Positions 17,559 through 37,037 of a stretch of 64,000 nt of DNA are shown piece after piece. The stretch lies in assembly GCF_000009045.1 (NCBI RefSeq), contig NC_000964.3, positions 744,001 to 808,000 on the forward strand. Reading direction: 5' to 3'. The notes beneath the pieces were generated by a model that was not told where the DNA came from, did not search any database, and saw only the letters and a program-made list of their open reading frames with translations. Position 1 is the stretch's first letter, and every line of letters starts with the position of its first letter. This DNA is from Bacillus subtilis subsp. subtilis str. 168. GTDB lineage: Bacteria > Bacillota > Bacilli > Bacillales > Bacillaceae. Made by a program: the position numbers and the translations under genes.

Positions 17559-17628
17559 CCATCTCTGTTTTTTTGACTTTCGCCACTGTTTTTTGAGTGT
17601 TTCGCCCTATCCGAACGCTTTAAAATAA

Positions 17629-19871
<2,243 letters not shown>

Positions 19872-19874
19872 CGG

Positions 19875-20765
19875 ATGGAGCCGGTCAACCAGCCTGTCAG
19901 AGAAGCCCCGGTTTTTGAGAGAAAAAAAGCCGGGCGCGTCAGTCCCAAACGCATACTGTTCCATGTTTTTACGGCAACGCTGGCGGTGTTGCTGCTGTAC
20001 CCGGTTATTTGGCTGTTTGTCAGCTCGTTTAAAGAAAGCGCCAGTATTTTTACAACCTCACATTCTCTCATTCCAGACCCTTTTATTCTCAGTAACTATG
20101 CTGAAGGGTGGAAGGGCATTGCGGGACAGCCGTTTCTGACGTTTATTAAAAACTCGGCGATTATTGTCGGGCTGTCAACAATCGGTGCCGTCATGTCATC
20201 GGCTGTCATTGCGTACGGATTTGCGCGTATACCGTTTAAGGGAAAAAAATTTTGGTTTGCGTGCATGATGGGGACGTTAATGCTGCCTCATGAAGTGTTG
20301 ATGATTCCGCAGTATATTATGTTTGCGAAATTAGACTGGCTGAATTCCTTTAAACCAATTGTCGTTCCGCAATTTTTCGGGCATGCGTTTTTTATCTTTC
20401 TGATGATCCAGTTTATCCGGACGATTCCCGAGGAGCTGGATGAAGCCGCGCGAATCGACGGATGCGGACGCTTTGCCTGCTTTTGGCGGATCATTCTCCC
20501 GCTGATTGCCCCCGCGCTTGCGACGTCTGCGATTTTCTCCTTCTATTGGAAGTGGGAGGAGCTGATTCAGCCGCTCTTGTATTTGAATAAGCCGGAGCTT
20601 TACCCTGTTTCACTTGCGCTGAAGCTTTTTCTCGATACAGAGTCGGCTTCGAACTGGGGCGCGATGTTTGCCATGTCAGCCGTCTCGTTATTGCCTGTGA
20701 TTCTTGTTTTCTTTTTGTTTCAGAAATATATCGTTCAGGGCATCAGTACGACCGGATTAAAATAA
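19875..20765 (+). CDS. yesQ: ABC sugar permease
   Basis: [11 protein letters not shown]; [15 protein letters not shown]-terminus. Confidence 0.92.
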
Positions 20766-20780
20766 AAAGGAGTGTTGCAG

Positions 20781-21815
20781 ATGGCACAGCTTATCTTTGA
20801 TGAAGAAAAGGTGACGTCGGTTATTGACCGGATCGTGAAACGGACATTTCAGATGGATTTTGCGTGGGATTGGCCGGGCGGCGTTGCGTTTTACGGTGTG
20901 GCGGAGGCCTATGAAGCGACGGAAAACGAGGAATATATCAATCTGTTAAAAACGTGGGTGGATGAACAGCTGGAGGATGGGCTGCCGCCGCTTTCGATCA
21001 ACGGAGTTTCCATTGGGCATACGCTTTTGTTCCTCCACAAGGTGACAGGTGATGACGTGTATTTGGAAACAGCGGCCGAGATGGCGGAATATGTGCTGCA
21101 TAAGGCGCCGCGCTTTGGCGAGGGTATCCTTCAGCATACGGTGAATGCGGCAGAATACGTATTCCCTGAACAGGCATGGGCGGATACGCTGATGATGGCT
21201 GGGCTGTTTATGCTGAGAATCGGGCGGGTCATGGAGCGTGAGGATTATTTTGAAGACGGCCTGCGCCAGTTTCACGGACATGAGGATGTGCTTCAGGACC
21301 CTGTCACGAATTTGTACTACCACGCCTGGGACAACAAAGCGCAAAATCATCTGTCGGGGATTTATTGGGGCAGGGCGAACGGCTGGGCGGCACTCACGAT
21401 GGCAAAGGCGCTCCCGCTTATTGAGGTGACACATCCTTCCTTTATGATCATCGACGGATCGCTCAGAGACCAGCTGAGCGCGCTTGTCCGGCTTCAGGAT
21501 GAATCAGGGCTGTGGCATACAATTTTGGATGATCCGGATTCTTATCTGGAGGTTTCGGCATCAGCGGGTATTGCTTCTGCTCTGATGTCGAGCGGAAAGC
21601 TGTATACAAAATATGTGCAGAAATCGCTTGCCGCCATTTTGGATGCAGTGGAAGAGGACGGACGGGTCAGCAGGGTATCGGCCGGGACAGCCGTCATGAA
21701 AAATGCCGAAGGATACAAACAGGTGCCTTACAAACGAATACAAGGATGGGGGCAGGGACTTGCGCTGACGTTTCTTGCTGATGTTTTGAAAACGAAAAAA
21801 CGCTTGTATCAGTAA
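20781..21815 (+). CDS. yesR: Unsaturated rhamnogalacturonyl hydrolase (GH105)
   Basis: ATG 20781 after AAAAGGAG; WDW, WADTLMM, YYHAWD, WGRANGW, EVSASA motifs. Confidence 0.92.
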
Positions 21816-21837
21816 AGATAGCGGCGGGGGGAGAGGG

Positions 21838-24123
21838 ATGAAAAAACAGCCTCAACAGAAGGAACGGGTTTCTCGCTGGAAGGGAACGTATTTCAAAAGA
21901 AACTTTGTCTTCATTTTGCTGATTGCCTGTATTCCCGGATTGCTGACTGGCGGCGCAATCTACTTTCTTTCGATCGACAAGGTGGAGAAAGAGCTGCAGA
22001 GATCGCATGAAACACAGGTGGCGCGTGAGGTCAGCCGAATGGATGAGAAGCTGGGAGTGCTTGAACTGGCACTCACCCAGATGGCCTACGATTCTTCACT
22101 GATGAACGGATTGGCCGAGAGGGATTTGGAGAAAGACTTTACGTTCTCCTATCAATTAACGAAAAAGCTGTTTCTTTTGCGGGATCAGCAGCCGCTGATC
22201 GAGCAGGCTTCCATCTTTCTGAACAGCCCCCGGCCACTTGTGCTGAGCCCTGAATACAGCGCTTTGACAGAACAGGAGGCGCTTCGCAAGTATCGCTCGC
22301 TGCTTGCCTCAGACCACAGCATTTATTGGAAACGGTCGGGAAACCAAGCGATGCTGATCCAGCTCATTCCGGGCGCGGCGGAGAAACCGTTCGGCGCGAT
22401 CATGCTGGCGGTTGATCCGAAAGAAATGGAATCAATCCTGCAAAGCTTGTCCCCCTATCCTGATGGCAGTGCGTTGCTTTTAGATCAAAATCGAGAGGTG
22501 CTGTTTCATGAGGGGGAAAAAGATTTTGAAAAGACTTTACTTCATGAGATAAAAAAACAGCCTGCTGAGAACGGCCATTTTCAGATGGAATGGAAAGGCA
22601 AGGTGTATTCTGTCTCCTTTGGAGAAATGAACCGGATGCATCAGCAATGGACCTTTGTGTCAGCGGCGCCTCTTTCAGCTATTACAGCGCCGATGGTGTT
22701 TTTATCAAAAGTGATCATCGTGATGCTGGTCATTTGCATCGGTTTGGCGGTGTGCATGACATGGTATGCATCAAAAAAAATCTATCGTCCCATCCAGCAT
22801 TTGCTTGGCTTGTTTACCGGAGGAGAGAAGAAAACATGGCAGGCGTCCGGGCAGGATGAATTCAAATGGATTGAAAAGAGATGGCAGGATCTATCCCTTG
22901 AAAGCCGGAAGCTCCAACAGCAGCTCCTGCGGCAGACGCCCCATATGAAAAAGAGTTTTTTGCAGCATCTCTTACAGAGCGATTTTTACTATGACAACGA
23001 GGAAAGCCTCAGATTTCGGATGGAGGAGGCTGGCTGGAACATCGGCGGAAACGTGTTTCATGTGCTTGATCTACAGGTGACAGGGCTCCGCTGTGAAAAA
23101 AGCATCTTCCGTGAAGGTGATGAACAGCTTGCCGTGTTTACACTGACTAATATCGCTGAGGAATTGGCGGCTAAACGCGTTTTTCAGCTCTCCATACTTG
23201 ATATCGGCCGGCTTTCTGTCACCGTTCTTGTGATGAAAACAAACAGCTCTGATCTGAAGGCGTATATAACGGAGCTGGCACGCCAATTTGGAGATGTAAC
23301 CGGACTATGCCTGACCTCGACATTGAGCAGCAAGACGGAGCGTGTCACGGAAATTCCTTCTTTATTTCAGGATGTGAAATGCGGCAAATCCCGCAGGAAG
23401 TTTGCTAACCGGGATCAGGTCATTGATTTGCAGGCCGACTTCCCTCGGGATGAGCAGTTCGCTCCTTATTACCCTTTTGAGCTGGAAAAACAAATTGTTC
23501 AGACCATCCGGCTGGAAAGAAAACAGGAAGCCAAGGAACTGATAGATGGATGTATGAAGGAACTGTCGGAAAAAGCGGCCATAGACAGGCATGTGCATTC
23601 CGCCCTGATTCAGCTGTTTTCCCGCATTCAGGAGGATATTTTGCATTCCGGGCTCAATCCCAGCGAACTGTTTCAGCACCGGAATCCGTTTCTTGATATT
23701 TCAGAATTGCGCGAACCTAACGAAGCGGCGGCCTGGCTGATGGATGTAGTGGTGACGCCTTACCTTTCCAAGCTTGAGGGCAGAAAAAACAGACAGCAAA
23801 AGCAGCTGGCAGAACGTGTGATTGCGATGATTCACGAACAGTATATGGCGGACATTTCATTGGAAAGCTGTGCCGATGCGCTTGGCATGAATTCCTATAC
23901 GTTAAGCAAGGCATTTAAGCAAGTGACCGGCATTAATTTTATCGATTATGTGACCCAGATCAGAATCGAAAAGGCGAAAGAACTGCTGGTCAATACGAAT
24001 AAAAAAATTCATGATGTGTCTGAAGAAGTCGGCTATCGCCACAATTATTTCAATCGGATTTTTAAAAAACAGGTCGGCATGCCGCCGGGTGTCTTCAGGC
24101 AAATGTATCAGGAAACGCCGTGA
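21838..24123 (+). CDS. yesS: Membrane-anchored AraC-family activator of the cluster
   Basis: Two TMs flanking an extracellular sensor; C-terminal AraC HTH ([27 protein letters not shown]). Confidence 0.92.
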
Positions 24124-24136
24124 AAGGAGAGAACAT

Positions 24137-24835
24137 GTGATGAAGAAACCGATTCAAGTATTTTTAGCGGGGGATTCCACTGTGAGTGACTGCCCGCCTC
24201 ATGAAGCGCCGATGGCGGGGTGGGGGCAGGTATTCGGGCAATTGTTTTCTGAAGGTGTGCTGGTCCGCAATCATGCCAAAGGAGGAGCGAGCACCAATTC
24301 TTTTGTGGAGGAAGGAAGGCTTCAAGCAATTGCCGAGCACATCACACAAGGCGATTATTTGTTGATTCAATTCGGCCACAATGACCAAAAACCGCGGGGG
24401 ACGAAGCCGTACTCCACATTTCAGCAGTTTCTTACCTTGTTTGCAGATACGGCACGCGAAAAGGGCGCGCATCCTGTGTTCGTCACATCGGTGCAGCGCC
24501 GCCGCTTTGATGAAAACGGACGGATCGAGCATACGCTCGGTGAGTATCCCGATGCGATGAAAGCACTGGCGAAGGAGCTCGATGTACCTGTGATTGATCT
24601 GCTTGCGAAAACAAAGGTGCTGTATGAAGCATACGGGCCGGAGGAGTCGAAGCGATTGTTCGTTTGGTTTCAGCCGAATGAACATCCGAATTACCCGGAC
24701 GGCATTGAGGACAATACGCATTTTTCGGAAAAAGGTGCAATGGAGGTTGCGAAGCTTGTGGCAGAAGGCATTGAAGAGCTCGGACTTCCGCTTAAGGACC
24801 ACCTTGTGAGCCGGGAGGGAAAAGAACATGTATAA
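24137..24835 (+). CDS. rhgT: Rhamnogalacturonan acetylesterase (CE12, SGNH)
   Basis: GDST, GW, GGAST, QFGHND, DNTH; GTG 24137 or ATG 24140 after AAAGGAGA. Confidence 0.92.
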   Translation: MMKKPIQVFLAGDSTVSDCPPHEAPMAGWGQVFGQLFSEGVLVRNHAKGGASTNSFVEEGRLQAIAEHITQGDYLLIQFGHNDQKPRGTKPYSTFQQFLTLFADTAREKGAHPVFVTSVQRRRFDENGRIEHTLGEYPDAMKALAKELDVPVIDLLAKTKVLYEAYGPEESKRLFVWFQPNEHPNYPDGIEDNTHFSEKGAMEVAKLVAEGIEELGLPLKDHLVSREGKEHV

Positions 24836-25490
24836 GGAAGGCGCTTGCTTGTACCGCAATCCGCTCCGGTCTAAAAGCGATGTGAAGGATTGGCGGATGG
24901 AGGGAGGCGGACAGATCTCATTTGACGATCACAGCTTGCACCTGTCACATGTCCAGGATGAAGCGCACTTTGTCTTTTGGTGTCCGGAAACCTTTCCAGA
25001 CGGCATCATTGTGACATGGGACTTCTCTCCGATCGAGCAGCCTGGACTGTGTATGCTGTTTTTTGCCGCTGCGGGTATTCGCGGCGAGGATTTGTTTGAC
25101 CCAAGTCTCAGGAAAAGAACAGGAACATACCCTGAGTATCATTCAGGAGATATCAATGCCCTCCACCTGTCGTATTTCCGCAGAAAATACGCGGAGGAAA
25201 GAGCGTTCCGCACCTGCAATTTAAGAAAAAGCCGCGGTTTCCATCTCGCCGCAATGGGGGCCGATCCGCTGCCTTCTCCAGACGACGCTGATTCTCCGTA
25301 TCGTATGAAGCTGATCAAAGACAAAGGCTATGTGCACTTTTCAATCAATGGTCTGCCCATTCTTGAGTGGATGGACGACGGCAGCACATATGGGCCTGTG
25401 TTAACAAAAGGAAAAATCGGGTTCCGGCAGATGGCCCCCATGAAAGCCGTTTACAGGGATTTTGCCGTGCATCAAGCGGTGAGAAGATGA
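24828..25490 (+). CDS. yesU: YesU (DUF1961-like, beta-sandwich) protein of unknown function
   Basis: ORF coupled to rhgT; HFVFWCPETFPD, GKIGFRQM. Confidence 0.82.
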   Translation: MYKEGACLYRNPLRSKSDVKDWRMEGGGQISFDDHSLHLSHVQDEAHFVFWCPETFPDGIIVTWDFSPIEQPGLCMLFFAAAGIRGEDLFDPSLRKRTGTYPEYHSGDINALHLSYFRRKYAEERAFRTCNLRKSRGFHLAAMGADPLPSPDDADSPYRMKLIKDKGYVHFSINGLPILEWMDDGSTYGPVLTKGKIGFRQMAPMKAVYRDFAVHQAVRR

Positions 25491-26113
25491 AGACGACTGT
25501 AACGGATGCGCTTTATGCAGGCTGCGAAGCGGTGGTGAAAATAGCATGGCTCAACGGGCTGTGGCTGTTGTTTACACTTTTGGGCGGCGTTCTTTTCGGA
25601 TGGGCGCCGAGCACAGCTGCGATGTGTGCCGTTATAAGGAAATGGCTGATGGGGCAAAAGGATGTCCCGATATTTTCGTTATTTCTCGATACCTATAAAA
25701 AAGAGTTTCTCAAGGTTAATGCGATCGGATTGGCGTTTTCGGCTCTTTTGCTCATATTGTCTGCCAACTATCATTATTTTTCTGCCAGTACGAATTGGCT
25801 GTCCTTTGCCGTAACAAGCTGCACGCTGCTTGCAGGGCTTTTGTATATCATCGCGCTGATGTATGTGTTTCCCCTTTATGTGCATTACCAGCTCCCGCTT
25901 CGCAAATATATTCCGCAGGCACTGCTGTTTGGCGCCATGAGACCGCTGACAACTGGCTGTATGCTGATCGGGTGCGGATTTGTCCTTTATTTGCTGTATA
26001 CGCTTCCTGGCCTGATCCCATTTTACGGCCCGTGTTTATTTGGGCTTGTGTTGATGTTTTTTGCTCTTAGGGGATTTCAAAAGACGGAGGCCCAGCACCA
26101 TCAAGCCGGGTAA
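25487..26113 (+). CDS. yesV: DUF624 membrane protein, paralog of YesL
   Basis: ATGA overlap at 25487; IAWLNGLWLL..GWAPSTAAMC..FLDTYKKEF. Confidence 0.85.
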   Translation: MKTTVTDALYAGCEAVVKIAWLNGLWLLFTLLGGVLFGWAPSTAAMCAVIRKWLMGQKDVPIFSLFLDTYKKEFLKVNAIGLAFSALLLILSANYHYFSASTNWLSFAVTSCTLLAGLLYIIALMYVFPLYVHYQLPLRKYIPQALLFGAMRPLTTGCMLIGCGFVLYLLYTLPGLIPFYGPCLFGLVLMFFALRGFQKTEAQHHQAG

Positions 26114-26177
26114 CAAAAAAATGACAAATAAGCAAAAAAGTGCAGTGTCCGAAATAGGCAGATGCAAAAAAGTGAAA

Positions 26178-26228
26178 TTGAAGACAGCTCACAAAGCGCA
26201 TAAAATCCAATTTAAGTAAGCGCTTACA
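26178..26228 (+). promoter_or_regulatory. SigA-type promoter plus cre upstream of yesW
   Basis: TTGAAG-17-TAAAAT (26178-26206); cre AGTAAGCGCTTACA at 26215-26228. Confidence 0.65.
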
Positions 26229-26233
26229 GATAA

Positions 26234-28096
26234 ATGAGAAGGAGCTGTCTGATGATTAGACGAAGGAAACGCATGTTTACCGCTGTTACGTTGCTGGTCT
26301 TGTTGGTGATGGGAACCTCTGTATGTCCTGTGAAAGCTGAAGGGGCAGCGCGGCAGATGGAAGCGCTGAACCGGGGGCTTGTAGCGGTCAAGACGGACGG
26401 GGGCATTTTTGTCAGCTGGCGGTTTCTTGGAACCGAAAACGCATCTGTTTTGTTCAATGTGTACAGAGACGGGCAAAAACTGAATGCTGCGCCTGTCAAA
26501 ACAACGAACTATGTGGATAAAAACGGTTCGGCGGGCTCAACGTATACGGTTCGGGCTGTTGTAAACGGTACCGAACAGCCGGCTTCTGAAAAAGCCTCCG
26601 TATGGGCGCAGCCGTATCATTCCGTCCCGCTGGATAAACCGGCTGGCGGCACGACGCCAAAGGGTGAATCTTACACGTACAGCGCTAATGACGCAAGTGT
26701 TGGCGATGTGGATGGTGACGGGCAATACGAGCTGATCCTGAAATGGGACCCGTCCAACTCAAAAGACAATTCACAGGATGGCTATACGGGTGACGTGCTG
26801 ATTGACGCGTATAAACTGGACGGCACAAAGTTATGGCGGATCAATCTCGGCAAAAACATCAGAGCGGGCGCGCACTACACCCAGTTTATGGTGTATGACC
26901 TTGATGGTGACGGAAAAGCAGAAGTGGCAATGAAAACGGCAGACGGGACAAAAGACGGCACGGGCAAAGTAATTGGAAATGCCAATGCAGATTACAGAAA
27001 TGAACAGGGGCGTGTGCTTTCAGGCCCTGAATATCTCACTGTGTTTCAAGGTTCAACCGGGAAAGAGCTTGTCACCGCAAATTTTGAACCGGCGCGCGGC
27101 AATGTGTCGGATTGGGGAGACAGCTACGGCAACCGTGTTGACCGTTTTCTCGCCGGCATTGCCTACCTTGATGGACAGCGGCCGAGCCTGATCATGACCA
27201 GAGGGTATTACGCTAAAACCATGCTAGTTGCCTATAACTTCAGGGACGGAAAGCTGTCAAAGCTTTGGACGCTGGACTCCTCAAAGTCAGGAAATGAAGC
27301 GTTTGCCGGACAGGGGAATCACAACCTGAGCATCGCGGACGTTGACGGGGATGGAAAAGATGAGATTATTTTCGGCTCAATGGCTGTTGATCATGACGGG
27401 AAAGGCATGTACTCGACCGGCTTAGGCCATGGGGATGCCCTCCATACAGGAGATCTTGATCCGGGCCGGCCGGGGCTTGAGGTGTTTCAAGTTCATGAGG
27501 ACAAAAATGCAAAATACGGCTTATCTTTCCGGGATGCTGCAACTGGAAAAATCCTTTGGGGCGTTTATGCCGGCAAGGATGTAGGCCGGGGAATGGCTGC
27601 TGATATTGACCCGCGTTATCCGGGACAGGAGGTGTGGGCAAACGGTTCTCTCTACTCAGCGAAAGGGGTCAAAATCGGAAGCGGGGTTCCGTCCTCGACC
27701 AACTTCGGCATCTGGTGGGACGGCGATCTGCTCCGGGAACAGCTGGACAGCAACCGAATTGATAAGTGGGATTATCAAAACGGCGTATCGAAAAATATGC
27801 TGACTGCATCAGGCGCAGCGGCTAACAACGGCACAAAAGCAACACCAACGCTTCAGGCTGATCTGCTCGGTGACTGGCGCGAGGAAGTGGTGTGGAGAAC
27901 GGAGGACAGCAGTGCTCTGCGCATTTACACGACGACCATTCCGACTGAGCACAGGCTGTATACGCTGATGCACGATCCGGTGTACCGGCTTGGCATCGCC
28001 TGGCAAAATATCGCCTATAACCAGCCGCCGCACACAAGCTTCTTTTTAGGAGACGGCATGGCGGAACAGCCAAAACCAAATATGTATACGCCTTAA
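26234..28096 (+). CDS. yesW: Rhamnogalacturonan endolyase (PL11), secreted
   Basis: Signal peptide; MEALNRGLVAV, DVDGDGQYE, NIRAGAHYTQ, YNQPPH. ATG 26252 fits the AAGGAG SD better. Confidence 0.95.
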   Translation: MRRSCLMIRRRKRMFTAVTLLVLLVMGTSVCPVKAEGAARQMEALNRGLVAVKTDGGIFVSWRFLGTENASVLFNVYRDGQKLNAAPVKTTNYVDKNGSAGSTYTVRAVVNGTEQPASEKASVWAQPYHSVPLDKPAGGTTPKGESYTYSANDASVGDVDGDGQYELILKWDPSNSKDNSQDGYTGDVLIDAYKLDGTKLWRINLGKNIRAGAHYTQFMVYDLDGDGKAEVAMKTADGTKDGTGKVIGNANADYRNEQGRVLSGPEYLTVFQGSTGKELVTANFEPARGNVSDWGDSYGNRVDRFLAGIAYLDGQRPSLIMTRGYYAKTMLVAYNFRDGKLSKLWTLDSSKSGNEAFAGQGNHNLSIADVDGDGKDEIIFGSMAVDHDGKGMYSTGLGHGDALHTGDLDPGRPGLEVFQVHEDKNAKYGLSFRDAATGKILWGVYAGKDVGRGMAADIDPRYPGQEVWANGSLYSAKGVKIGSGVPSSTNFGIWWDGDLLREQLDSNRIDKWDYQNGVSKNMLTASGAAANNGTKATPTLQADLLGDWREEVVWRTEDSSALRIYTTTIPTEHRLYTLMHDPVYRLGIAWQNIAYNQPPHTSFFLGDGMAEQPKPNMYTP

Positions 28097-28109
28097 CTGA
28101 AAGGGGGAA

Positions 28110-28135
28110 GGAACGGGCTGCGCGCAGCCCGTTCC
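28110..28135. other. Perfect 26-bp palindrome between the SD and start codon of yesX
   Basis: GGAACGGGCTGCGCGCAGCCCGTTCC is its own reverse complement; no U-tract. Confidence 0.9.
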
Positions 28136-28141
28136 CATCAA

Positions 28142-29980
28142 ATGAAACCAAAAAAGAGGCAAATGGAATACCTGACCAGAGGTTTGATTGCGGTACAGAC
28201 AGAACAGGGCGTGTTTGTCAGCTGGCGTTTTCTCGGCACGGATCATGAGACGACGGCTTTTCACCTTTATCGGGATGGAAAGCGGATCACCCGCGATCCA
28301 ATCGCTGAAAGCACTAATTTTCTCGATCAAAACGGAACGGCTGACTCTGTTTATCAAGTGGCGGCTGTCAATAAAGGACGGGAAGAAAAGCTTTCCAAGA
28401 AAGCTCGTGTTTGGCAGGAAAATGTCCTGGAGGTTCCTCTTGCCAAACCGGAAGGCGGTGTGACGCCGGACGGAAAGCCGTACACTTACAGCGCCAATGA
28501 TGCCAGTGTCGGGGATATAGACGGGGATGGAGAATATGAAATGATCCTGAAGTGGGACCCGTCCAATTCAAAAGACAACGCTCATGACGGTTATACCGGG
28601 GAGGTGCTCATAGATGCCTATAAACTGGACGGCACCTTTTTGTGGCGCATCAACCTCGGCAGAAACATCAGAGCGGGTGCTCATTACACGCAATTTATGG
28701 TGTATGACCTTGACGGTGACGGAAAAGCAGAAATCGCCATGAAAACAGCTGACGGCACAACAGACGGGAAAGGACATATCATCGGTGATGAGCAGGCCGA
28801 TTTTAGAAACGAACAGGGCAGAATTTTGTCCGGTCCGGAATATTTGACCGTGTTTAAAGGAGAAACCGGTGAGGCGCTCACGACCGTGGAATATGAACCG
28901 CCCCGCGGCAAGCTGGAGGATTGGGGAGACGGCTATGGAAACCGGATGGACCGTTTTCTCGCCGGGACCGCTTATTTGGATGGGGAGCGGCCGAGCCTTG
29001 TTATGGCGCGCGGCTACTATACGAGAACCGTGCTCGTGGCATACGATTTCAGAAACGGAAGGCTCAAAAAACGATGGGTATTTGACTCCAACCAGCCGGG
29101 ACATGAAGCATACGCAGGACAGGGGAACCACAGCTTGAGCGTGGCGGACGTCGACGGAGACGGAAAGGATGAAATCATATACGGCGCAATGGCTGTCGAT
29201 CATGACGGAACCGGCCTGTACTCAACGGGCCTCGGGCACGGAGACGCGATGCATGTAGGGGATCTGGACCCGTCACGAAAAGGGCTTGAAGTGTTCCAGG
29301 TGCATGAGGACGCCACGAAGCCGTACGGACTGTCGCTGCGAGATGCCGGAACCGGTGAGATATTATGGGGCGTCCATGCTGGAACTGACGTTGGCCGGGG
29401 CATGGCGGCTCATATTGATCCAAGCTACAAAGGATCGCTCGTCTGGGGAATTGATCCGCCGGGCAATGATGGCATGTCGTACGGGCTTTTCACGAGCAAA
29501 GGCGAAAAAATCAGCGACAAAGCGCCCTCTTCAGCCAATTTCGCCATCTGGTGGGACGGTGATTTGGTCAGAGAACTGCTTGATCATGACTGGGACGGAA
29601 CGATCGGCAGGCCAAAGATTGAAAAATGGGATGCTGAAAACGGCTGTCTGAAGACGATATTTCAGCCGGCCGGCGTGTTGTCCAACAACGGCACGAAAGG
29701 AAACCCGGTTCTTCAGGCCAACCTGTTCGGAGACTGGCGGGAAGAAGTGATATGGAGAACGGAAGACAGCAGCGCGCTCCGTATCTATACAACAACACAT
29801 CTCACCCGCCACTGCTTTTACACGCTGATGCATGATCCGGTTTACAGGCTCGGCATCGCCTGGCAGAATACCGCCTACAACCAGCCGCCGCACACGAGCT
29901 TTTACCTCGGAACGGGAATGAAAAAACCGCCGAAGCCCGCCCTGTACATAGCGGGAAGCAAAGCGGAGGCGCCGCTGTAG
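28142..29980 (+). CDS. yesX: Rhamnogalacturonan exolyase (PL11), paralog of YesW without a signal peptide
   Basis: Extensive identity to YesW; insertions GIDPPGNDGMS and DHDWDGTIGRP. Confidence 0.95.
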   Translation: MKPKKRQMEYLTRGLIAVQTEQGVFVSWRFLGTDHETTAFHLYRDGKRITRDPIAESTNFLDQNGTADSVYQVAAVNKGREEKLSKKARVWQENVLEVPLAKPEGGVTPDGKPYTYSANDASVGDIDGDGEYEMILKWDPSNSKDNAHDGYTGEVLIDAYKLDGTFLWRINLGRNIRAGAHYTQFMVYDLDGDGKAEIAMKTADGTTDGKGHIIGDEQADFRNEQGRILSGPEYLTVFKGETGEALTTVEYEPPRGKLEDWGDGYGNRMDRFLAGTAYLDGERPSLVMARGYYTRTVLVAYDFRNGRLKKRWVFDSNQPGHEAYAGQGNHSLSVADVDGDGKDEIIYGAMAVDHDGTGLYSTGLGHGDAMHVGDLDPSRKGLEVFQVHEDATKPYGLSLRDAGTGEILWGVHAGTDVGRGMAAHIDPSYKGSLVWGIDPPGNDGMSYGLFTSKGEKISDKAPSSANFAIWWDGDLVRELLDHDWDGTIGRPKIEKWDAENGCLKTIFQPAGVLSNNGTKGNPVLQANLFGDWREEVIWRTEDSSALRIYTTTHLTRHCFYTLMHDPVYRLGIAWQNTAYNQPPHTSFYLGTGMKKPPKPALYIAGSKAEAPL

Positions 29981-30137
29981 GAGGACTAAGGGATAAGACG
30001 CAAAGGCTGAACGCTACGCCAAGATGATTAGAGAACTGGCAGGACGAACCAATGCTCAAGCGCTGTACGCACCGGTTTTTTCAAGGGAAGAGCTATCCGT
30101 GATGGAAGCTGTATAAAAAACGAGGAGGAATGAAAAA

Positions 30138-30791
30138 ATGGCAAATCATATTTATCTTGCCGGCGATTCGACTGTTCAAACGTATGGAGACAGCACAAAT
30201 CAAGGGGGCTGGGGGCAGTTTCTCGGCTCGCATCTGCCGGAGCATATTCAAGTGATCAACAGAGCGATCGGGGGAAGAAGCTCGAAAACATTTGTGGAAG
30301 AGGGCAGGCTTCAGGCAATCCTCGATGTGATTGAGCCGGATGATTGGCTGTTCGTGCAGATGGGCCATAATGACGCGTCAAAAAATAAGCCGGAGCGCTA
30401 CACCGAGCCCTATACTACTTATAAACAATATTTAAAGCAGTATATCGCAGGCGCGCGGGAAAAAGGCGCCCATCCGCTTCTCATTACCCCCGTAGCCCGC
30501 TTTCATTACGAAAACGGCGTGTTTTTGAACGATTTTCCTGATTACTGCATTGCCATGAAGCAGACGGCCGCTGAGGAGAATGTCCAGCTCATTGATCTGA
30601 TGGAGAAAAGTCTCGCTTTCTTTACTGAGAAGGGCGAGGAAAAAGTGTACACCTATTTTATGATTTCAGAAGGGATTAACGATTACACGCATTTTACAAA
30701 AAAAGGCGCAAATGAAATGGCGAAACTTGTGGCAAAAGGCATAAAGGAGCTCGGCCTGCCATTGACAGAATCGATCATCAAAGAAAGGTGA
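30138..30791 (+). CDS. yesY: Rhamnogalacturonan acetylesterase (CE12), paralog of RhgT
   Basis: GDST, GGRSS, QMGHND, DYTH. Confidence 0.92.
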   Translation: MANHIYLAGDSTVQTYGDSTNQGGWGQFLGSHLPEHIQVINRAIGGRSSKTFVEEGRLQAILDVIEPDDWLFVQMGHNDASKNKPERYTEPYTTYKQYLKQYIAGAREKGAHPLLITPVARFHYENGVFLNDFPDYCIAMKQTAAEENVQLIDLMEKSLAFFTEKGEEKVYTYFMISEGINDYTHFTKKGANEMAKLVAKGIKELGLPLTESIIKER

Positions 30792-30798
30792 AAATGTG

Positions 30799-32790
30799 AT
30801 GAGAAAACTGTATCATGGCGCTTGCTATTATCCGGAATTATGGGATGAAGAGACGATTCAGCAGGACATTGACATCATGCGTGAAGTTGGCGTAAATGTT
30901 GTGCGGATCGGCGAATTTGCCTGGTCAGTCATGGAACCTGAAGAAGGAAAAATTGACGTCGGTTTTTTCAAAGAAATCATCGCCCGGCTGTATGATAGCG
31001 GGATCGAAACGATTATGTGCACGCCGACGCCTACCCCGCCGATTTGGTTCTCACATGGCCGGCCCGAACGCATGCATGCCAATGAAAAAAGAGAGATCAT
31101 GGGGCATGGCTCCCGTCAGCATGCCTGTACGAACAACCCGTATTTCCGAAAAAAAGCCGCCATCATCACCACAGCCATCGCCAAGGAGCTTGGCCGGCTC
31201 CCGGGGCTGATCGGATGGCAGCTAGACAATGAGTTTAAATGCCATGTTGCAGAATGCATGTGTGAGACATGCTTGCGCCTATGGCATGACTGGCTCAAAA
31301 ATCGCTACGGGGTAATTGAGCGCTTGAATGAAGCTTGGGGAACCGATGTGTGGAGCGAGACCTATCAGACGTTTGAGCAAGTCCCGCAGCCGGGACCGGC
31401 CCCGTTTCTGCATCATGCCTCTCTACGCACTATGTATCAGCTGTTTTCGATGGAGATGATCGCTTCGTTTGCGGATGAACAGGCCAAAATCATCCGCTGC
31501 TATTCAGATGCGCCGATCACGCATAACGGATCAGTCATGTTCAGCGTGGACAATGAGCGAATGTTTCAGAATCTCGATTTTGCCTCCTATGACACGTACG
31601 CTTCGCAGGAAAACGCCTCTGCCTTTTTATTGAACTGTGATTTATGGAGAAATCTGAAACAAGGGCGCCCGTTTTGGATTTTGGAAACGAGTCCGTCGTA
31701 TGCCGCCTCGCTTGAAAGCTCCGCTTACCCGCACGCAGACGGGTATTTGCAGGCCGAAGCCGTATCGTCCTACGCCTTAGGGAGCCAGGGGTTTTGCTAC
31801 TGGCTATGGCGACAGCAGCGTTCAGGCAGCGAGATTTCCCACGGTTCGGTTCTCAGTGCCTGGGGCGAACCCACCATCGGCTATCAAAATGTGCTGGCGG
31901 TTGAGCGGGCAAGAAAGGAAATCGAGCCTATTATTCTATCGACTGAACCCGTTCAAGCCGAGGCGGCGATGACTTACTCTGACAGAGCAAAAGCATTTAT
32001 TAAAACTGAGCCTCACCGGGGACTCCGGCATCGTTCGCTTGTGACGCATTTTTATGAACGTATTCTCAACACGGGGATTCACCGTGACCTTATTCCGGAA
32101 GGCGCTCCACTGGACGGCTATCGCTTGCTGTTTACGCCATTTGTGCCGTATTTGTCTTCTGAATTTATCAAAAAAGCTTCGGCATTCGCTGAAGCGGGCG
32201 GCATCTGGATCACCGGGCCGCTGACAGGAGGACGCACATGCGAGCATACCATTCATACCGATTGCGGACTTGGCGAACTTGAGAAAACGTCAGGGATCAA
32301 AACACTTTTTACCTTTCCGATGAATGAGAACGTGAATACAGGAAAAGCGTTTGGCATCACGGCGCCGCTCGGACTGTGGAGCGCGGTGTTTGACACAGAG
32401 AGCGGAAACACCCTTGGCACGGTTGAAGCAGGACCGGGGGCGGGCCATGCTTTTCTGACGGAACGGAATTACGGCGAGGGGAAAATTGTCATGCTGGGCT
32501 CGCTTCCATCCGGGAAAGAAGGGGATGCGATGCTGGAAGCGCTCGTCAGGCATTATGCGGAGGAAGCTGTTATTTCCAGCCGGTCGGATGTGACACCCGG
32601 CACGATCGTTGCCCCGCGTATAGGCGAAAACGGCCTTGTGTGGATCGTTGTGAATATGGATGGAAAAGGCGGGAGCGTGACATTGCCGGAATCGGGAACG
32701 GATTTGTTGACGCACCGCTTGGAAAAGGCGGGGAGACTGGCGGTCGGACCGCATGAATACCGTGTGATTCAATTTGACAATCACAGCTGA
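30799..32790 (+). CDS. yesZ: Beta-galactosidase (GH42)
   Basis: GACYYPELW, RIGEFAWS, WQLDNE, FWILET motifs. Confidence 0.93.
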   Translation: MRKLYHGACYYPELWDEETIQQDIDIMREVGVNVVRIGEFAWSVMEPEEGKIDVGFFKEIIARLYDSGIETIMCTPTPTPPIWFSHGRPERMHANEKREIMGHGSRQHACTNNPYFRKKAAIITTAIAKELGRLPGLIGWQLDNEFKCHVAECMCETCLRLWHDWLKNRYGVIERLNEAWGTDVWSETYQTFEQVPQPGPAPFLHHASLRTMYQLFSMEMIASFADEQAKIIRCYSDAPITHNGSVMFSVDNERMFQNLDFASYDTYASQENASAFLLNCDLWRNLKQGRPFWILETSPSYAASLESSAYPHADGYLQAEAVSSYALGSQGFCYWLWRQQRSGSEISHGSVLSAWGEPTIGYQNVLAVERARKEIEPIILSTEPVQAEAAMTYSDRAKAFIKTEPHRGLRHRSLVTHFYERILNTGIHRDLIPEGAPLDGYRLLFTPFVPYLSSEFIKKASAFAEAGGIWITGPLTGGRTCEHTIHTDCGLGELEKTSGIKTLFTFPMNENVNTGKAFGITAPLGLWSAVFDTESGNTLGTVEAGPGAGHAFLTERNYGEGKIVMLGSLPSGKEGDAMLEALVRHYAEEAVISSRSDVTPGTIVAPRIGENGLVWIVVNMDGKGGSVTLPESGTDLLTHRLEKAGRLAVGPHEYRVIQFDNHS

Positions 32791-32815
32791 TTCTTTGTAT
32801 CGAATCAGCTTTTTT
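32785..32815 (+). terminator. Terminator-like hairpin between yesZ and yetA
   Basis: AGCTGATTC/GAATCAGCT stem followed by a T-run. Confidence 0.65.
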
Positions 32816-32833
32816 CTATGGAGGGAGAGACAG

Positions 32834-35407
32834 ATGAAAAAGATCAAATGGTTATCAGGACAGCCAAAGGTGACAAGCGGCGTGACGTGGGGCATGCCAT
32901 GGAAAAAAGGAGAATTAAAAAAAGGAGACCGTCTGGCGCTTATGAATGAAAACGCGGAAACGCGATATGTGCAAAGCGAACCGTCGGCCTATTGGCCGGA
33001 CGGGAGCATCAAGTGGACGAAGCACGCGGCGGTGTTTGGCGGTCAGGAAAACCAAAGCTTTACAGTGCACAAAAGAGAAGTGCCGCAGCCAACTGAATCG
33101 CTCAGCATTCTTGAGACAGAGCATGATATCCAAGTGGATACAGGAGCACTCGTTTGTACCATTCATAAAACAGGATCTGATTTCATTCAATCATTGCAGA
33201 TCAATGGAAAGCCGATCGCCGCAGGCGGGAGGCTCGTTGCGATAAGAGAAACGAGAAAAGAGTCAGCGGCGAAAATGGTTCTTTTGCATGAAAGGTCTGT
33301 CAGCTTTATCAAACGGGCGGCGATTGAGCAGAGTGGTCCTGTCAAAGCAGTAGTCAAAATCGAGGGAGTGCATGTGCTTCATAAAACGTATGAGGAATGG
33401 CTGCCGTTTGTCATCCGATTAACGTTTTATGCCGGGCTGTCTGAGATCGGCCTTGTGCACACGCAGCTGATTGACAGGAGCGGTAAACTAGAATTCGTTA
33501 AGGGGCTCGGCATCGAATTCGACCTTTTTTTGGAGGGAGAGCCGTACAACCGCCATTTCCGCTTTGCGGGAGAGAAAGGGATGTATAAAGAACCCGCCCA
33601 GCTGTTTGGCACACGTAAATTCAATGAACGATATCCGCTTTATGAAAAACAAATCAATGGCGAAATGCTGTCTCCAGATGAAGAGCATAAGGAATGGTTT
33701 GCACATGGCACACAGAATGCGGTTTGGGACGATGTCAAGATCGTGCAAGATTCCAGCGATCATTACAGCCTGTCAAAACGGACCGGAAAAGATTATGCGT
33801 GGGTTGGAATGCTGCATGGCAGCCGGGCGAAGGGGCTCTGCTATGCGGGCGGAAAAAATGGCGGTGTGGCTCTCGGCCTGCGGTATTTCTTTGAGAAATA
33901 TCCTTCAGCACTGGAAATCACAGGTCTTGCCGGCAGCCGCCCCAAAATGACTATCTGGCTTTGGCCTCCGGACGGCGAAGCGATGGATTTGCGGCATTAT
34001 ACAGGAAACACTCACGTGGCCAGCGCGTATGAAGGCTTTGATGAAATGCGCTCTGATCCGACAGGCATTGCGAACACAAATGAAATAAGCCTGGCGTGCT
34101 TTTCGCACATGCCGTCTGACGAAGTCCTCAATGCGCTGGCTGACAAATGGCAGGCGCCCCCGCTCATTGTATGCGAGCCGGACGTCTATTACGAATCAAA
34201 AGCACTCGGGGTATGGAGCATCATTGACACATCCCATCCGCTCAAAAAAGAGCTGGAAGAACAGCTTGATGCGGCCTTTCTGTTTTATAAAAAGGAAGTA
34301 GAGCAACGCAGATGGTACGGTTTTTGGCATTATGGCGATGTCATGCATACGTATGACCCGATCCGGCATATGTGGCGGTACGATCTCGGCGGATACGCAT
34401 GGCAAAACAATGAGCTCGTTCCGACCCTATGGCTGTGGCAGGCGTTTTTCCGCTCAGGCAGAGAGGATATCTTCCGAATGGCAGAAGCCATGACCCGCCA
34501 TACGAGTGAAACGGACAGCTTTCACCTCGGTGAATATGCCGGGCTTGGCTCACGGCATAATGTTGTGCACTGGGGATGCGGCTGCAAGGAAGCGAGAATC
34601 AGCATGGCCGGGCTTCATAAATTCTATTATTATCTGACGGGTGATGACCGGACGGGAGATCTTTTGACAGAAGTGAAGGATGCCGATTATGCCCTTGTCA
34701 AAACCGATCCGATGCGCGCTTTTTACGAGAAAGGCAAGCACCCGACTCACGCCAGAACGGGACCGGACTGGGCGGCGTTTTGCTCGAACTGGCTGGCGGA
34801 ATGGGAGCGGACCGAAAATTCGGAATATCTCAAAAAAATCGAAACGGGAATCAACTGTCTGAAGCGGCTGCCGCTCCGCTTATTATCTGGCCCGACATTT
34901 GAATATGATCCGGCGACCTCGATGCTTCATCATATGGGAGACGGCATTGCGGGCGGATATCATATGATCATTGCCTTCGGCGCGCCGCAAGTGTGGATGG
35001 AGCTGGCTGAGCTTCTTGATGACTGGGAATGGGAGGATATGCTGAGTGAATTCGGCGAATTTTACACACTCAGTGATGAGGAAAAACGAAAAAAAAGCGG
35101 AGGCGCTCTTCATGACGGGCATTTTCACTGGCCGATGTTCGCCGCCGGTATGACAGCCTACGCCGCAAGAAAAAAGCAAGATCCTCATCTCGCCGCCAAA
35201 GCGTGGAATCTTTTGCTAGAAGATAAGCTCAGCCATACGCCGCTTCCGATCAAACCGGAGCGCATCGAGACATGGACGCAGCTAGAGGAGCTTCCATGGG
35301 TGACAACGAACACTGTCTCTCAATGGTGTTTAAATGTCATAGCGGCGCTGGAACTGATCGGAGATTCCCTTCCGGCAAAAAAAGAAACATCGGGCAAAAA
35401 AGGATAA
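32834..35407 (+). CDS. yetA: YetA, probable exo-rhamnogalacturonan lyase-like (PL26/PcRGLX-like) cytoplasmic protein
   Basis: ATG 32834 after GGAGGGAG; GVTWGMPW, AYWPDGSIKWT, WYGFWHYGD, GSRHNVVHW; family call from memory. Confidence 0.75.
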   Translation: MKKIKWLSGQPKVTSGVTWGMPWKKGELKKGDRLALMNENAETRYVQSEPSAYWPDGSIKWTKHAAVFGGQENQSFTVHKREVPQPTESLSILETEHDIQVDTGALVCTIHKTGSDFIQSLQINGKPIAAGGRLVAIRETRKESAAKMVLLHERSVSFIKRAAIEQSGPVKAVVKIEGVHVLHKTYEEWLPFVIRLTFYAGLSEIGLVHTQLIDRSGKLEFVKGLGIEFDLFLEGEPYNRHFRFAGEKGMYKEPAQLFGTRKFNERYPLYEKQINGEMLSPDEEHKEWFAHGTQNAVWDDVKIVQDSSDHYSLSKRTGKDYAWVGMLHGSRAKGLCYAGGKNGGVALGLRYFFEKYPSALEITGLAGSRPKMTIWLWPPDGEAMDLRHYTGNTHVASAYEGFDEMRSDPTGIANTNEISLACFSHMPSDEVLNALADKWQAPPLIVCEPDVYYESKALGVWSIIDTSHPLKKELEEQLDAAFLFYKKEVEQRRWYGFWHYGDVMHTYDPIRHMWRYDLGGYAWQNNELVPTLWLWQAFFRSGREDIFRMAEAMTRHTSETDSFHLGEYAGLGSRHNVVHWGCGCKEARISMAGLHKFYYYLTGDDRTGDLLTEVKDADYALVKTDPMRAFYEKGKHPTHARTGPDWAAFCSNWLAEWERTENSEYLKKIETGINCLKRLPLRLLSGPTFEYDPATSMLHHMGDGIAGGYHMIIAFGAPQVWMELAELLDDWEWEDMLSEFGEFYTLSDEEKRKKSGGALHDGHFHWPMFAAGMTAYAARKKQDPHLAAKAWNLLLEDKLSHTPLPIKPERIETWTQLEELPWVTTNTVSQWCLNVIAALELIGDSLPAKKETSGKKG

Positions 35408-35448
35408 CAGCCGGAATTTCATAGGAGAAATGGTGCAAAAAATGAAGA

Positions 35449-35478
35449 TTGCAAGAATTTATGTAAGCGCTTTATATT
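35449..35478 (+). promoter_or_regulatory. Promoter with cre in the spacer upstream of lplA
   Basis: TTGCAA-18-TATATT; TGTAAGCGCTTTAT at 35462-35475. Confidence 0.55.
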
Positions 35479-35528
35479 GAGAGGGGCAAAGGGGAAATGC
35501 AAATTGAAAAAAGGGGGACTTACGCAAC

Positions 35529-37037
35529 ATGAAAATAAGAATGCGAAAAAAATGGATGGCCTTGCCGCTTGCTGCCATGATGATCGCCGGATGCAGCCAT
35601 TCGGAAACATCCAATTCAGCAAGCGGTTCGAAAGATACGATCAAAATTATGGCGCCGCTCTTATCGCCGGAAAGCCCAAGTGATAAGAGCCCTTCATTAA
35701 AAGCGCTCGAAAAATACACAGGCAAAGAGATTAAGGTCACATGGGTGCCTGATTCATCCTACAACGACAAATTCAACATCGTCATGGCTTCAGGAGAGAT
35801 GCCTCACGCGATTGTCATTAAAGATAAGTCAGCCGGCTTTATCAAATCTGTCAAAGCAGGGGCGTTTTGGGAGCTGTCTCCTTATTTAAAAGACTACAAG
35901 AATTTAAGCCAGGCAGATGAAAAGATTTTGAAGAACAGCTCGGTGAACGGCGAGGTGTACGGAATCTACAGAACGAGGGATCTGATCAGGGCGTGTATGA
36001 TCATCAGAACCGACTGGCTGAAAAATGTCGGTCTGGATATGCCGGAAACGCTTGATGATTTCTATGAAGTGCTGAAAGCCTTTAAGGAAAAAGATCCTGA
36101 CGGAAACGGCAAGGATGATACGTACGGCATGGTCGTGCCGAAATGGATGGGACTCGGCAACGGAAGCCCATGGGATGTTCTGCAAATCTGGTTCGGCGCT
36201 CCGAACCGCTACGGTGTTGAAAACGGAAAGCTGATTCCAGATTTTACAACGAAGGAATACATGGATGCGCTCACGTTTTTTAAAAAGCTCTATGATGAGG
36301 GCTTGATCAATAAGGACTTTGCTGTCATGGATTCTGCGAAGTGGAATGATCCGGTTGTAAAAGGAAAAGCGGGTGTCATCGTTGATACAGGCTCAAGAGC
36401 GTCTCAAATCCAAAGCGCGATGGAGGAGGCGGATGAGTCGAACAAGGATATCATTGATATCGTCGGCTCGCTTGAGGGACCGAATGGCAAGCGCACCTTC
36501 CCGACATCTGGTTATTCAGGCATGATCACGATACCAAAATCAAGCGTCAAAACCGAAAAAGAGCTGAAAGAGGTGCTGTCCTTCCTCGATAAGATGAATG
36601 ATAAGGAAGCGCAGATTCTCACGAACAACGGAGTGAAGGGCCGCAATTACGAGCTCAAGGACGGCGTATTCACCTCACTTGAAAAAAACAATAAATCTCT
36701 CCTGTATGAGCATGAAGGCTTGGCACAGTTCAGCATGTCGATTCCGAAAAGCGAGTATTACATCGAAGACCAGAAAACCAAGCTCTTCCAGCATCGCAAG
36801 GACATCATAACCGAAGGAGAAAAAATAGCCGTCTTTAACCCTGCTGAGTCGCTTGTATCTGATGTCTATACCCAAAAAGGAGCCCAGCTTGACAACATCA
36901 TCCTCGACGCGAGAACACAATTTATCATTGGAGAAATTGATGAAAAAGGGTTCGATGATGCGGTGGAGCTTTGGAAAAAAAGCGGCGGCAATGAACTGAT
37001 GAAGGACTTGAACAAATTGTACCAATCGTCAAAATAA
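35529..37037 (+). CDS. lplA: ABC transporter substrate-binding lipoprotein
   Basis: Lipobox IAGC; DGNGKDDTYG; SBP family 1. Confidence 0.92.
   Translation: MKIRMRKKWMALPLAAMMIAGCSHSETSNSASGSKDTIKIMAPLLSPESPSDKSPSLKALEKYTGKEIKVTWVPDSSYNDKFNIVMASGEMPHAIVIKDKSAGFIKSVKAGAFWELSPYLKDYKNLSQADEKILKNSSVNGEVYGIYRTRDLIRACMIIRTDWLKNVGLDMPETLDDFYEVLKAFKEKDPDGNGKDDTYGMVVPKWMGLGNGSPWDVLQIWFGAPNRYGVENGKLIPDFTTKEYMDALTFFKKLYDEGLINKDFAVMDSAKWNDPVVKGKAGVIVDTGSRASQIQSAMEEADESNKDIIDIVGSLEGPNGKRTFPTSGYSGMITIPKSSVKTEKELKEVLSFLDKMNDKEAQILTNNGVKGRNYELKDGVFTSLEKNNKSLLYEHEGLAQFSMSIPKSEYYIEDQKTKLFQHRKDIITEGEKIAVFNPAESLVSDVYTQKGAQLDNIILDARTQFIIGEIDEKGFDDAVELWKKSGGNELMKDLNKLYQSSK

Follow-up and report, generated by a model that had tools for sequence, protein, structure and literature searches.

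Split, or non-contiguous, ribosome-binding sites (RBSs), in which a stable hairpin stands between the Shine-Dalgarno (SD) sequence and the start codon, are textbook oddities, known mainly from genes 25 and 38 of bacteriophage T4. The gene 25 site lies where genes 26 and 25 meet [Nivinskas et al. 1999; Malys and Nivinskas 2009; reviewed in PMC3014915]. Its hairpin shortens the distance between the SD and the AUG from 27 to 11 nucleotides (nt), and the site is confined to close T-even phages [PMC3014915]. At gene 38 [Gold 1988, as cited in PMC7297116 and PMC3014915], a hairpin shortens the spacing from 22 to 5 nt [PMC3014915, PMC7297116]. Here we consider the junction between yesW and yesX, two lyase genes of Bacillus subtilis subsp. 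subtilis str. 168, the second of which encodes a pectin-degrading enzyme, within a 64,000-nt stretch of the chromosome (NC_000964.3, positions 744,001 to 808,000; "the window", whose coordinates are used unless stated otherwise). An earlier examination of the letters and open reading frames (ORFs) of this DNA, called here the sequence-only reading, had proposed that a hairpin between the yesX SD and AUG assists initiation in the manner of these T4 genes, a precedent that it quoted correctly [PMC3014915]. From the comparative analysis presented below, we judge it fairly likely, if by no means certain, that the yesX junction is a split RBS of the T4 gene 25/38 type. Folding of the hairpin would probably bring the SD and the yesX start codon to a normal distance of 8 nt.

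The junction is made up as follows, from the upstream gene to the beginning of the downstream one (all on the forward strand).

26234..28096, forward strand: coding sequence of yesW, from the ORF list; a rhamnogalacturonan endolyase of family PL11 (620 amino acids), with its TAA stop codon at 28094-28096
28099..28107, forward strand: the distal SD, GAAAGGGGG, which makes 9 pairs with the 3' tail of 16S rRNA, one of them G.U
28108..28109, forward strand: an AA linker from the SD to the foot of the hairpin; A or AA (1-2 nt) in 14 of 14 junctions
28110-28135, forward strand: a perfect 26-bp palindrome, GGAACGGGCTGCGCGCAGCCCGTTCC
28110..28120, forward strand: 5' arm of the hairpin, GGAACGGGCUG, identical across 14 genomes over its first 9 nt
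28121..28124, forward strand: loop of the hairpin, CGCG in strain 168 and of variable sequence and 4-6 nt in the relatives
28125..28135, forward strand: 3' arm of the hairpin, CAGCCCGUUCC, which contains no SD-like run
28136..28141, forward strand: a CAUCAA spacer (CATCAA in the DNA) from the hairpin to the AUG; A/U-rich, single-stranded and mostly unpaired in the prediction
28142..29980, forward strand: coding sequence of yesX; a rhamnogalacturonan exolyase of family PL11 (612 amino acids), with its ATG at 28142-28144
28154..28165, forward strand: a rival start, consisting of the purine run AAGAGG (28154-28159), CAA and an in-frame ATG at 28163 (Met8)

When the sequence was re-read, the coordinates that the sequence-only reading had assigned to the SD, the palindrome, the CATCAA and the ATG all proved exact, and the perfect palindrome does lie between the SD and the yesX AUG. 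The AAGGGGG at 28101-28107 is part of a full anti-SD match, GAAAGGGGG. From the last G of this SD (28107) to the A of the yesX ATG (28142) the linear distance is 34 nt, well over the roughly 15 nt beyond which an SD is too far from its start codon. When the 26-nt hairpin is omitted, the SD-to-AUG distance becomes, as had been calculated, 8 nt (34 minus 26), made up of 2 + 6 single-stranded nt. Thus, a stable hairpin absorbs the excess spacer and leaves a functional spacing, inside the span of 5-11 nt seen in T4. Translation in B. subtilis is strongly SD-dependent, and the optimal SD spacing in this organism is reportedly about 7-9 nt, a value said to come from the work of Vellanoweth and Rabinowitz in 1992.

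The resemblance to gene 25 extends beyond the geometry. In both cases the SD is linearly too far away and an intervening hairpin, when folded, shortens the distance (from 27 to 11 nt in T4 and from 34 to 8 nt at yesX), the site is at an intercistronic junction, and its occurrence is limited to a clade of close relatives. Unlike gene 25, however, yesX is a chromosomal gene of a Gram-positive organism, and its hairpin is both longer (26 nt omitted) and, at about -21 kcal/mol, more stable. In addition, the function of the gene 25 site was shown by mutagenesis and probing, whereas the yesX case is known from sequence comparison. The yesX junction shares with gene 38 the stable hairpin that parts the SD from the start codon, and differs from it in host and geometry; comparative data of the kind available for yesX are not part of the gene 38 case.

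To assess the strength of the SD, successive 10-mers of each junction were paired with the 3' tail of 16S rRNA, CACCUCCUUUCU. The distal SD forms a very strong duplex of -14.7 kcal/mol in strain 168 and of -13.9 to -15.2 kcal/mol across 14 junctions (strain 168 and 13 relatives, described below), and its core positions are invariant. By comparison, nothing within 22 nt of ATG 28142 on its 5' side pairs with the anti-SD better than +0.7 kcal/mol in strain 168, in keeping with the earlier statement that no SD lies near the AUG; in the 14 genomes scanned the best values within 22 nt 5' of the yesX ATG run from +0.7 to -1.7 kcal/mol, such that no alternative SD was found in this interval. Nor was there a small ORF that might use the distal SD, as no ATG, GTG or TTG occurs 5-12 nt 3' of it. 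A non-canonical start at CTG 28118, which is in frame and 10 nt past the SD, was considered and rejected: the codon is absent in L011-L013, three of the relatives, and 1-nt indels shift the frame in relatives.

The assignment of the yesX start codon itself is supported by the behavior of the sequence on either side of it. The 21 nt between ATG 28142 and ATG 28163 evolve like coding sequence among the relatives; the changes seen in codons 2-7 are synonymous (AAA to AAG, CCA to CCG, CAA to CAG), together with two amino-acid changes and one in-frame insertion of 3 nt. The equivalent of the CATCAA spacer varies among the relatives by indels of 1-2 nt, and because of these it is not coding. The ORF product is identical to the YesX chain of PDB 2zuy at 612 of 612 residues, its KPKKRQ residues are homologous to internal residues in longer YesX-like proteins, and its Pfam RGI_lyase domain begins at residue 6. 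Given the coding-like codons 2-7, the homology of KPKKRQ and the position of the domain, ATG 28142 is on these comparisons the start of yesX, and the distal SD is its sole SD. The yesW ORF encodes a PL11 paralogue of YesX (PDB 2z8r, YesW, is the paralogue match), and YesW contains the Pfam domains RGI_lyase and RGL11_C, starting from residue 40.

The junction query matched 23 of the 49 species genomes examined in the genus, and 14 of these, strain 168 included, have yesX directly after yesW. Conservation at other Bacillus yesW-yesX junctions, which the sequence-only reading had named as a check, is indeed found: all 14 junctions share the same order of strong SD, 1-2 nt, 11-12-bp hairpin, 6-8 A/U-rich nt and ATG. 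The predicted stability of the hairpin ranges from -18.2 to -21.5 kcal/mol, and the effective SD-AUG spacing in the relatives is 8-11 nt (a hand count that begins after the last G of the GGAGG-equivalent), to be set against the 5 nt and 11 nt of T4 and the 7-9-nt optimum of B. subtilis. In the relatives, 44-55 nt lie between the yesW stop and the yesX ATG. Other features drift, namely the sequence and length of the loop (4-6 nt), the palindromic center, the stop-to-SD distance (0-13 nt) and the frame offset between the genes (0, 1 or 2). Perfect 26-bp palindromy is thus restricted to a few genomes; the stem is conserved and the palindromic center is not.

Several of these junctions have peculiarities of their own. 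In L010 (G038) the yesW stop is shifted 3 nt downstream (CCT AAA TAG) and adjoins the SD; the stop-to-SD distance is clearly under no constraint. In L002 (G039), a 1-nt deletion at yesX nt 417 relative to strain 168 results in a frameshift and a stop at codon 156, and the SD-hairpin-ATG junction is intact; this yesX is either a pseudogene or an assembly error (the draft genome is 94% complete). In strain 168 itself, the yesW stop and the yesX ATG share a frame with 15 sense codons between them, and read-through of the TAA would fuse both lyases. A YesW-YesX fusion by stop-codon read-through or ribosome bypass is rejected on the varying frame offset among the relatives, and a bypass that lands on the CCC codons of the 3' arm meets a TGA. 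As the frame is not conserved in the relatives, its sharing in strain 168 is probably an accident.

Changes within the stem mostly preserve pairing. At pair 10, 10 genomes have U-A, 2 have C-G, 1 has G-C and 1 has an A.A mismatch; at pair 11, 11 genomes have G-C, 2 have G.U and 1 has U-A; and a single genome has G.U at pair 6. RNAalifold predicts 11 pairs, of which pair 10 is altered on both sides in 3 genomes. Thus, the structure is conserved, and two or three lineages show compensatory substitutions at pairs 10 and 11. As a neutral yardstick, the four-fold degenerate sites of yesW and yesX were taken from the same genomes. Across 13 genomes, only 19 of 343 such sites (5.5%) never change. At these sites the close species differ from strain 168 by 0.25-0.30, L011 and L012 by 0.42-0.43, L013 by 0.60 and L020 by 0.69. 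The 9-bp foot of the hairpin (28110-28118 paired with 28127-28135), however, is invariant at 17 of its 18 positions (binomial P ~7e-21 versus the four-fold 5.5%). The SD, the stem and the short gaps are under purifying selection.

As RNA, the palindrome folds into an 11-bp stem with a 4-nt loop (-20.9 kcal/mol). Within a 91-nt context, the centroid structure is the yesX hairpin alone (-21.9 kcal/mol), and 1 of 200 shuffled sequences folds equally well. In contexts of about 250 nt, the pair probability of the foot is at least 0.975 in each of the 14 genomes, whereas most of the AUG region is predicted to be unpaired (0.47-0.87). Perfect palindromes of at least 26 bp number 20 in the genome; since only about 0.06 are expected in 4.2 Mb under a uniform model, the yesX palindrome is not a product of chance. 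Approximately 12 of the 20 end in an A-run/T-run, which is typical of bidirectional terminators, and the yesX palindrome has no such runs. It is also the sole long stable hairpin of the 19-kb cluster (window 17000-36000), in which folding revealed no comparable hairpin at any other junction. The pattern of the foot occurs once in the genome, and a dispersed, REP-like repeat is rejected because it requires multiple copies. When the foot pattern was scanned across species, the matches listed were all unrelated sites in GC-rich genomes; in 596 Gb, chance alone should yield about 200 matches. Rfam, searched over window 20000-36000, has no family at the yesW-yesX junction. The single Rfam match in that range, CRISPR-DR10 at 30970-31010 (21.9 bits versus a gathering threshold of 39; E 0.58), is within a coding region and at chance level.

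The nine other genomes, in which yesW is not directly followed by yesX, offer a comparison. In five of the nine (L014-L018), no hairpin precedes the gene after yesW, and the ATG of this gene is about 8 nt from an ordinary SD. A yesX-like gene was located further downstream in six of the nine, with its ATG 6-8 nt past the SD, and this sister-clade SD resembles that of the subtilis clade (AAAGGGGGAGAGAGGAC versus AAAGGGGGAAGGAAC). The yesX-like proteins of the sister clade have an N-terminal extension of 14-25 codons before a conserved K-P-K/R-Q-M-E, an extension that B. subtilis YesX does not have. In a tree of YesW the 14 hairpin genomes make up one side of a branch with a support of 100/98 (the tree is unrooted, and the groups are defined by the feature); given this split, one change suffices. 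The hairpin co-occurs with the long SD-to-AUG distance, and the sister clade has neither. These comparisons suggest that the old start codon and the extension disappeared in the subtilis clade, where the hairpin would hold the former SD at a suitable distance from a new ATG. In L014-L018 and L031-L036, a gene lies between yesW and the yesX-like gene; the N-terminus of its product is hydrophobic and resembles a signal peptide.

For a split RBS at yesX, the following course of events can be envisioned. YesW and YesX would be translated from one mRNA. The 30S subunit would leave the 26-nt hairpin (11 bp, about -21 kcal/mol) protruding rather than melt it, and the SD-anti-SD helix and the P-site AUG would then be separated by 8 single-stranded nt (8-11 in the relatives). 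We infer, in other words, that the ribosome uses the distal SD for the yesX AUG with the hairpin folded on the ribosome. Since the SD-AUG gap is 8 nt only in the folded RNA, we propose that the hairpin is needed for yesX translation, and its stability and geometry would set the output of YesX relative to that of YesW. A ribosome terminating at the yesW stop should stay short of the hairpin, whose foot begins 14 nt past the TAA; because the foot is beyond the terminating ribosome, the hairpin should persist. A 30S subunit freed at the yesW stop could be captured by the adjacent SD. The hairpin may in addition protect the yesW part of the transcript from 3'-5' decay, a secondary role compatible with this mechanism.

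The structure-assisted initiation that the sequence-only reading put forward thus gains support from the layout common to the 14 junctions, the lack of an alternative SD, the coding-like codons 2-7 and the co-occurrence of hairpin and long spacing. Several observations weigh on the other side. The T4 hairpins are shorter and less stable than that of yesX, and in the ~250-nt contexts of the 14 genomes the SD has a predicted accessibility of only 0.30-0.61. Covariation is confined to the top two pairs of the stem, and the invariant 9-bp foot is uninformative about pairing; it stays the same, one G.U apart, even in genomes whose four-fold sites are saturated, which is more than a passive spacer or a purely structural element should need. 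The 14 genomes form one clade, and so the link between hairpin and long spacing rests on a single evolutionary event. Finally, in the most divergent of the hairpin genomes, L020 (G036), the stem is interrupted by an A.A mismatch, includes a G.U pair and runs into GUUUUUA, and this arrangement also resembles an intrinsic terminator placed between the SD and the AUG.

It is unlikely, though well worth keeping in mind, that the hairpin is instead a device that sets stoichiometry at the level of the mRNA, either as a 3' stabilizer against 3'-5' exonucleases or as a weak, factor-assisted terminator, such that yesW message exceeds yesX message and yesX is weakly translated by re-initiation of ribosomes that have finished yesW. 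A GC-rich hairpin only 14 nt past the stop of the upstream gene is what such a device would look like, the GUUUUUA after the L020 stem suits it, and the strong conservation fits it equally. There are also precedents: in the cip-cel and ABC-transporter operons of cellulolytic clostridia, intergenic stem-loops between polysaccharide-degradation genes set subunit ratios by selective RNA processing and stabilization, according to PMC4423207, PMC10311766 and PMC9045158, and the yesX stem-loop, similarly stable and similarly placed, could set a ratio as well. Unlike the clostridial stem-loops as they are described there, however, the yesX hairpin is preceded by the SD, and because the SD is 5' of the hairpin, an RNA that ends or is cut at the hairpin would leave yesX without one. 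The usual order of stem-loop, SD and AUG is therefore reversed, and no complete RBS belonging to the downstream gene follows the stem-loop. A U-tract is absent in 13 of the 14 genomes; in strain 168 the 9 nt after the stem (CAUCAAAUG) include 2 U, and the site is not on the list produced by a terminator scan, which agrees with the earlier view that it is not a terminator. A stabilizer or terminator would also leave unexplained the conserved 6-8 nt to the AUG and 1-2 nt to the SD, the sister clade's retention of yesW with no hairpin behind it, and the lack of similar hairpins at other junctions of the cluster. The entries listed in the Term-seq supplements of PMC8060035 and PMC12207403 include no yesW or yesX; expression of the operon is unlikely in the media used there. 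Stabilization or termination may well be a secondary function of the hairpin.

The unusual invariance of the foot is the chief reason to consider a trans-acting factor, be it an RNA-binding protein, a small RNA or a ribosomal component, that would recognize the hairpin by its sequence and turn yesX translation on or off, with the shortening of the spacer being secondary. The two strands of the foot, GGAACGGGC and GCCCGUUCC, are invariant at 17 of 18 positions despite saturation of the four-fold sites, which is more than structure should require. We nevertheless regard such a site as quite improbable: no candidate factor is known, Rfam gives no match, the single genomic copy of the motif defines no regulon, and the loop, which is the usual recognition surface, is the most variable part. 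Still less probable is that yesX truly starts at ATG 28163 (Met8), with the hairpin and the distal SD unrelated to initiation and the SD acting, for example, as a 5' stabilizer similar to STAB-SD. STAB-SD is a 5' mRNA stabilizer of cryIIIA in B. thuringiensis with the sequence GAAAGGAGG, reportedly described by Agaisse and Lereclus in 1996. The distal SD, GAAAGGGGG, resembles this sequence and, like it, is a near-perfect SD with no start codon at the canonical linear distance; however, STAB-SD is near the 5' end, far from the start codon and without a hairpin bridge, whereas the folded SD-AUG distance at yesX is canonical. As for Met8, the purine run AAGAGG does precede its ATG, but the duplex amounts to only -5.8 kcal/mol at a spacing of 3 nt, and the GAGG is missing from L013 and L020. 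In relatives with a longer N-terminus the Met8 equivalent is an internal, conserved residue, and the evidence from codons 2-7 and the Pfam domain again favors the upstream ATG; the possibility of a downstream ATG with its own SD, which the sequence-only reading had raised against itself, thus leaves ATG 28142 upheld. We give hardly any credence to the idea that the palindrome acts as DNA, whether as the operator of a dimeric regulator, a cruciform or a recombination site. Its perfect 26-bp symmetry in strain 168 would suit an operator, but the spacing of the half-sites is not fixed (8, 9, 10 or 13 nt by hand count), the center is non-palindromic in most relatives, the changes at pairs 10 and 11 keep pairing rather than sequence, and the site is inside the operon, 1.9 kb from the yesW promoter region. 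An operator is rejected on the variable half-site spacing and the pair-preserving changes.

Two genome-wide scans, one for perfect stems and one for folded imperfect stems, looked for other instances of a strong SD followed by a hairpin, 3-9 nt and the start codon of a long ORF. Most of the matches are inside ORFs or are terminators with chance start codons after them. The survivors of the filters are yesX, which is the most stable clean match, five CNNM paralogues (L158-L162), and one further site. The SD-hairpin-start layout therefore recurs in the B. subtilis genome. The paralogues begin at the following genome positions.

1,033,397, reverse strand: start of a CNNM paralogue
1,035,554, forward strand: start of a CNNM paralogue
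2,561,612, forward strand: start of a CNNM paralogue
2,720,263, reverse strand: start of a CNNM paralogue
3,217,452, reverse strand: start of a CNNM paralogue

CNNM, CBS and CorC_HlyC domains are present in the two of the five that were scanned with Pfam, and the N-termini are closely similar in all five. Each leader consists of GGAGGTG, a hairpin of 8-11 bp, 4-6 nt and an ATG or TTG, giving an effective spacing of about 9-12 nt (derived by hand); Rfam has no match over the five leaders. These hairpins are weaker than that of yesX (-9 to -15 kcal/mol). Moreover, their 3' arms carry SD-like AAGG/GAGG runs paired with CCUU-rich 5' arms, whereas the yesX 3' arm has no SD-like sequence. The CNNM leaders could be split RBSs or, given the SD-like runs in their 3' arms, SD-sequestering switches. 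The further site, at 4109843 on the forward strand and outside the window, has AAGGAGG, an 8-bp hairpin, 7 nt and a GTG that opens a 134-codon ORF beginning VKVIRIILQVLILYV. A more far-reaching interpretation combines several of these elements: the hairpin would be a sequence-specific and possibly regulated docking element that gates yesX translation, it would have arisen as the subtilis clade lost the ancestral start and extension, and, together with the five CNNM-paralogue leaders, hairpin-bridged RBSs would be a recurrent and overlooked class in Bacillus. We consider this combination distinctly unlikely.

The sequence-only reading had called the arrangement apparently undescribed for this operon, and in the searchable literature on yesX/rhgX and on SD-start hairpins in B. 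subtilis no earlier description of a hairpin-bridged site at yesX was found. What is new, as supported by the conservation among the 14 junctions, is a candidate for a conserved T4-type split RBS in a chromosomal operon of a Gram-positive bacterium; the kind itself was already known. If the split RBS is real, the ribosomes of B. subtilis, which are unusually SD-dependent, also accommodate a stable hairpin between the SD and the start codon. It would then explain how the yesW-yesX transcript gives rise to YesX, an exolyase without a signal peptide, and at what level relative to the secreted endolyase YesW. Predictors of gene starts or RBS strength that assume a contiguous SD, spacer and AUG would be expected to mis-score yesX. 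The junction also provides a genetically tractable test case with natural variants in loop length, compensatory pairs and spacing (8-11 nt). Finally, the comparison with the sister clade suggests a route by which split sites may originate, in which an old SD is retained and a hairpin replaces the lost 5' coding sequence.

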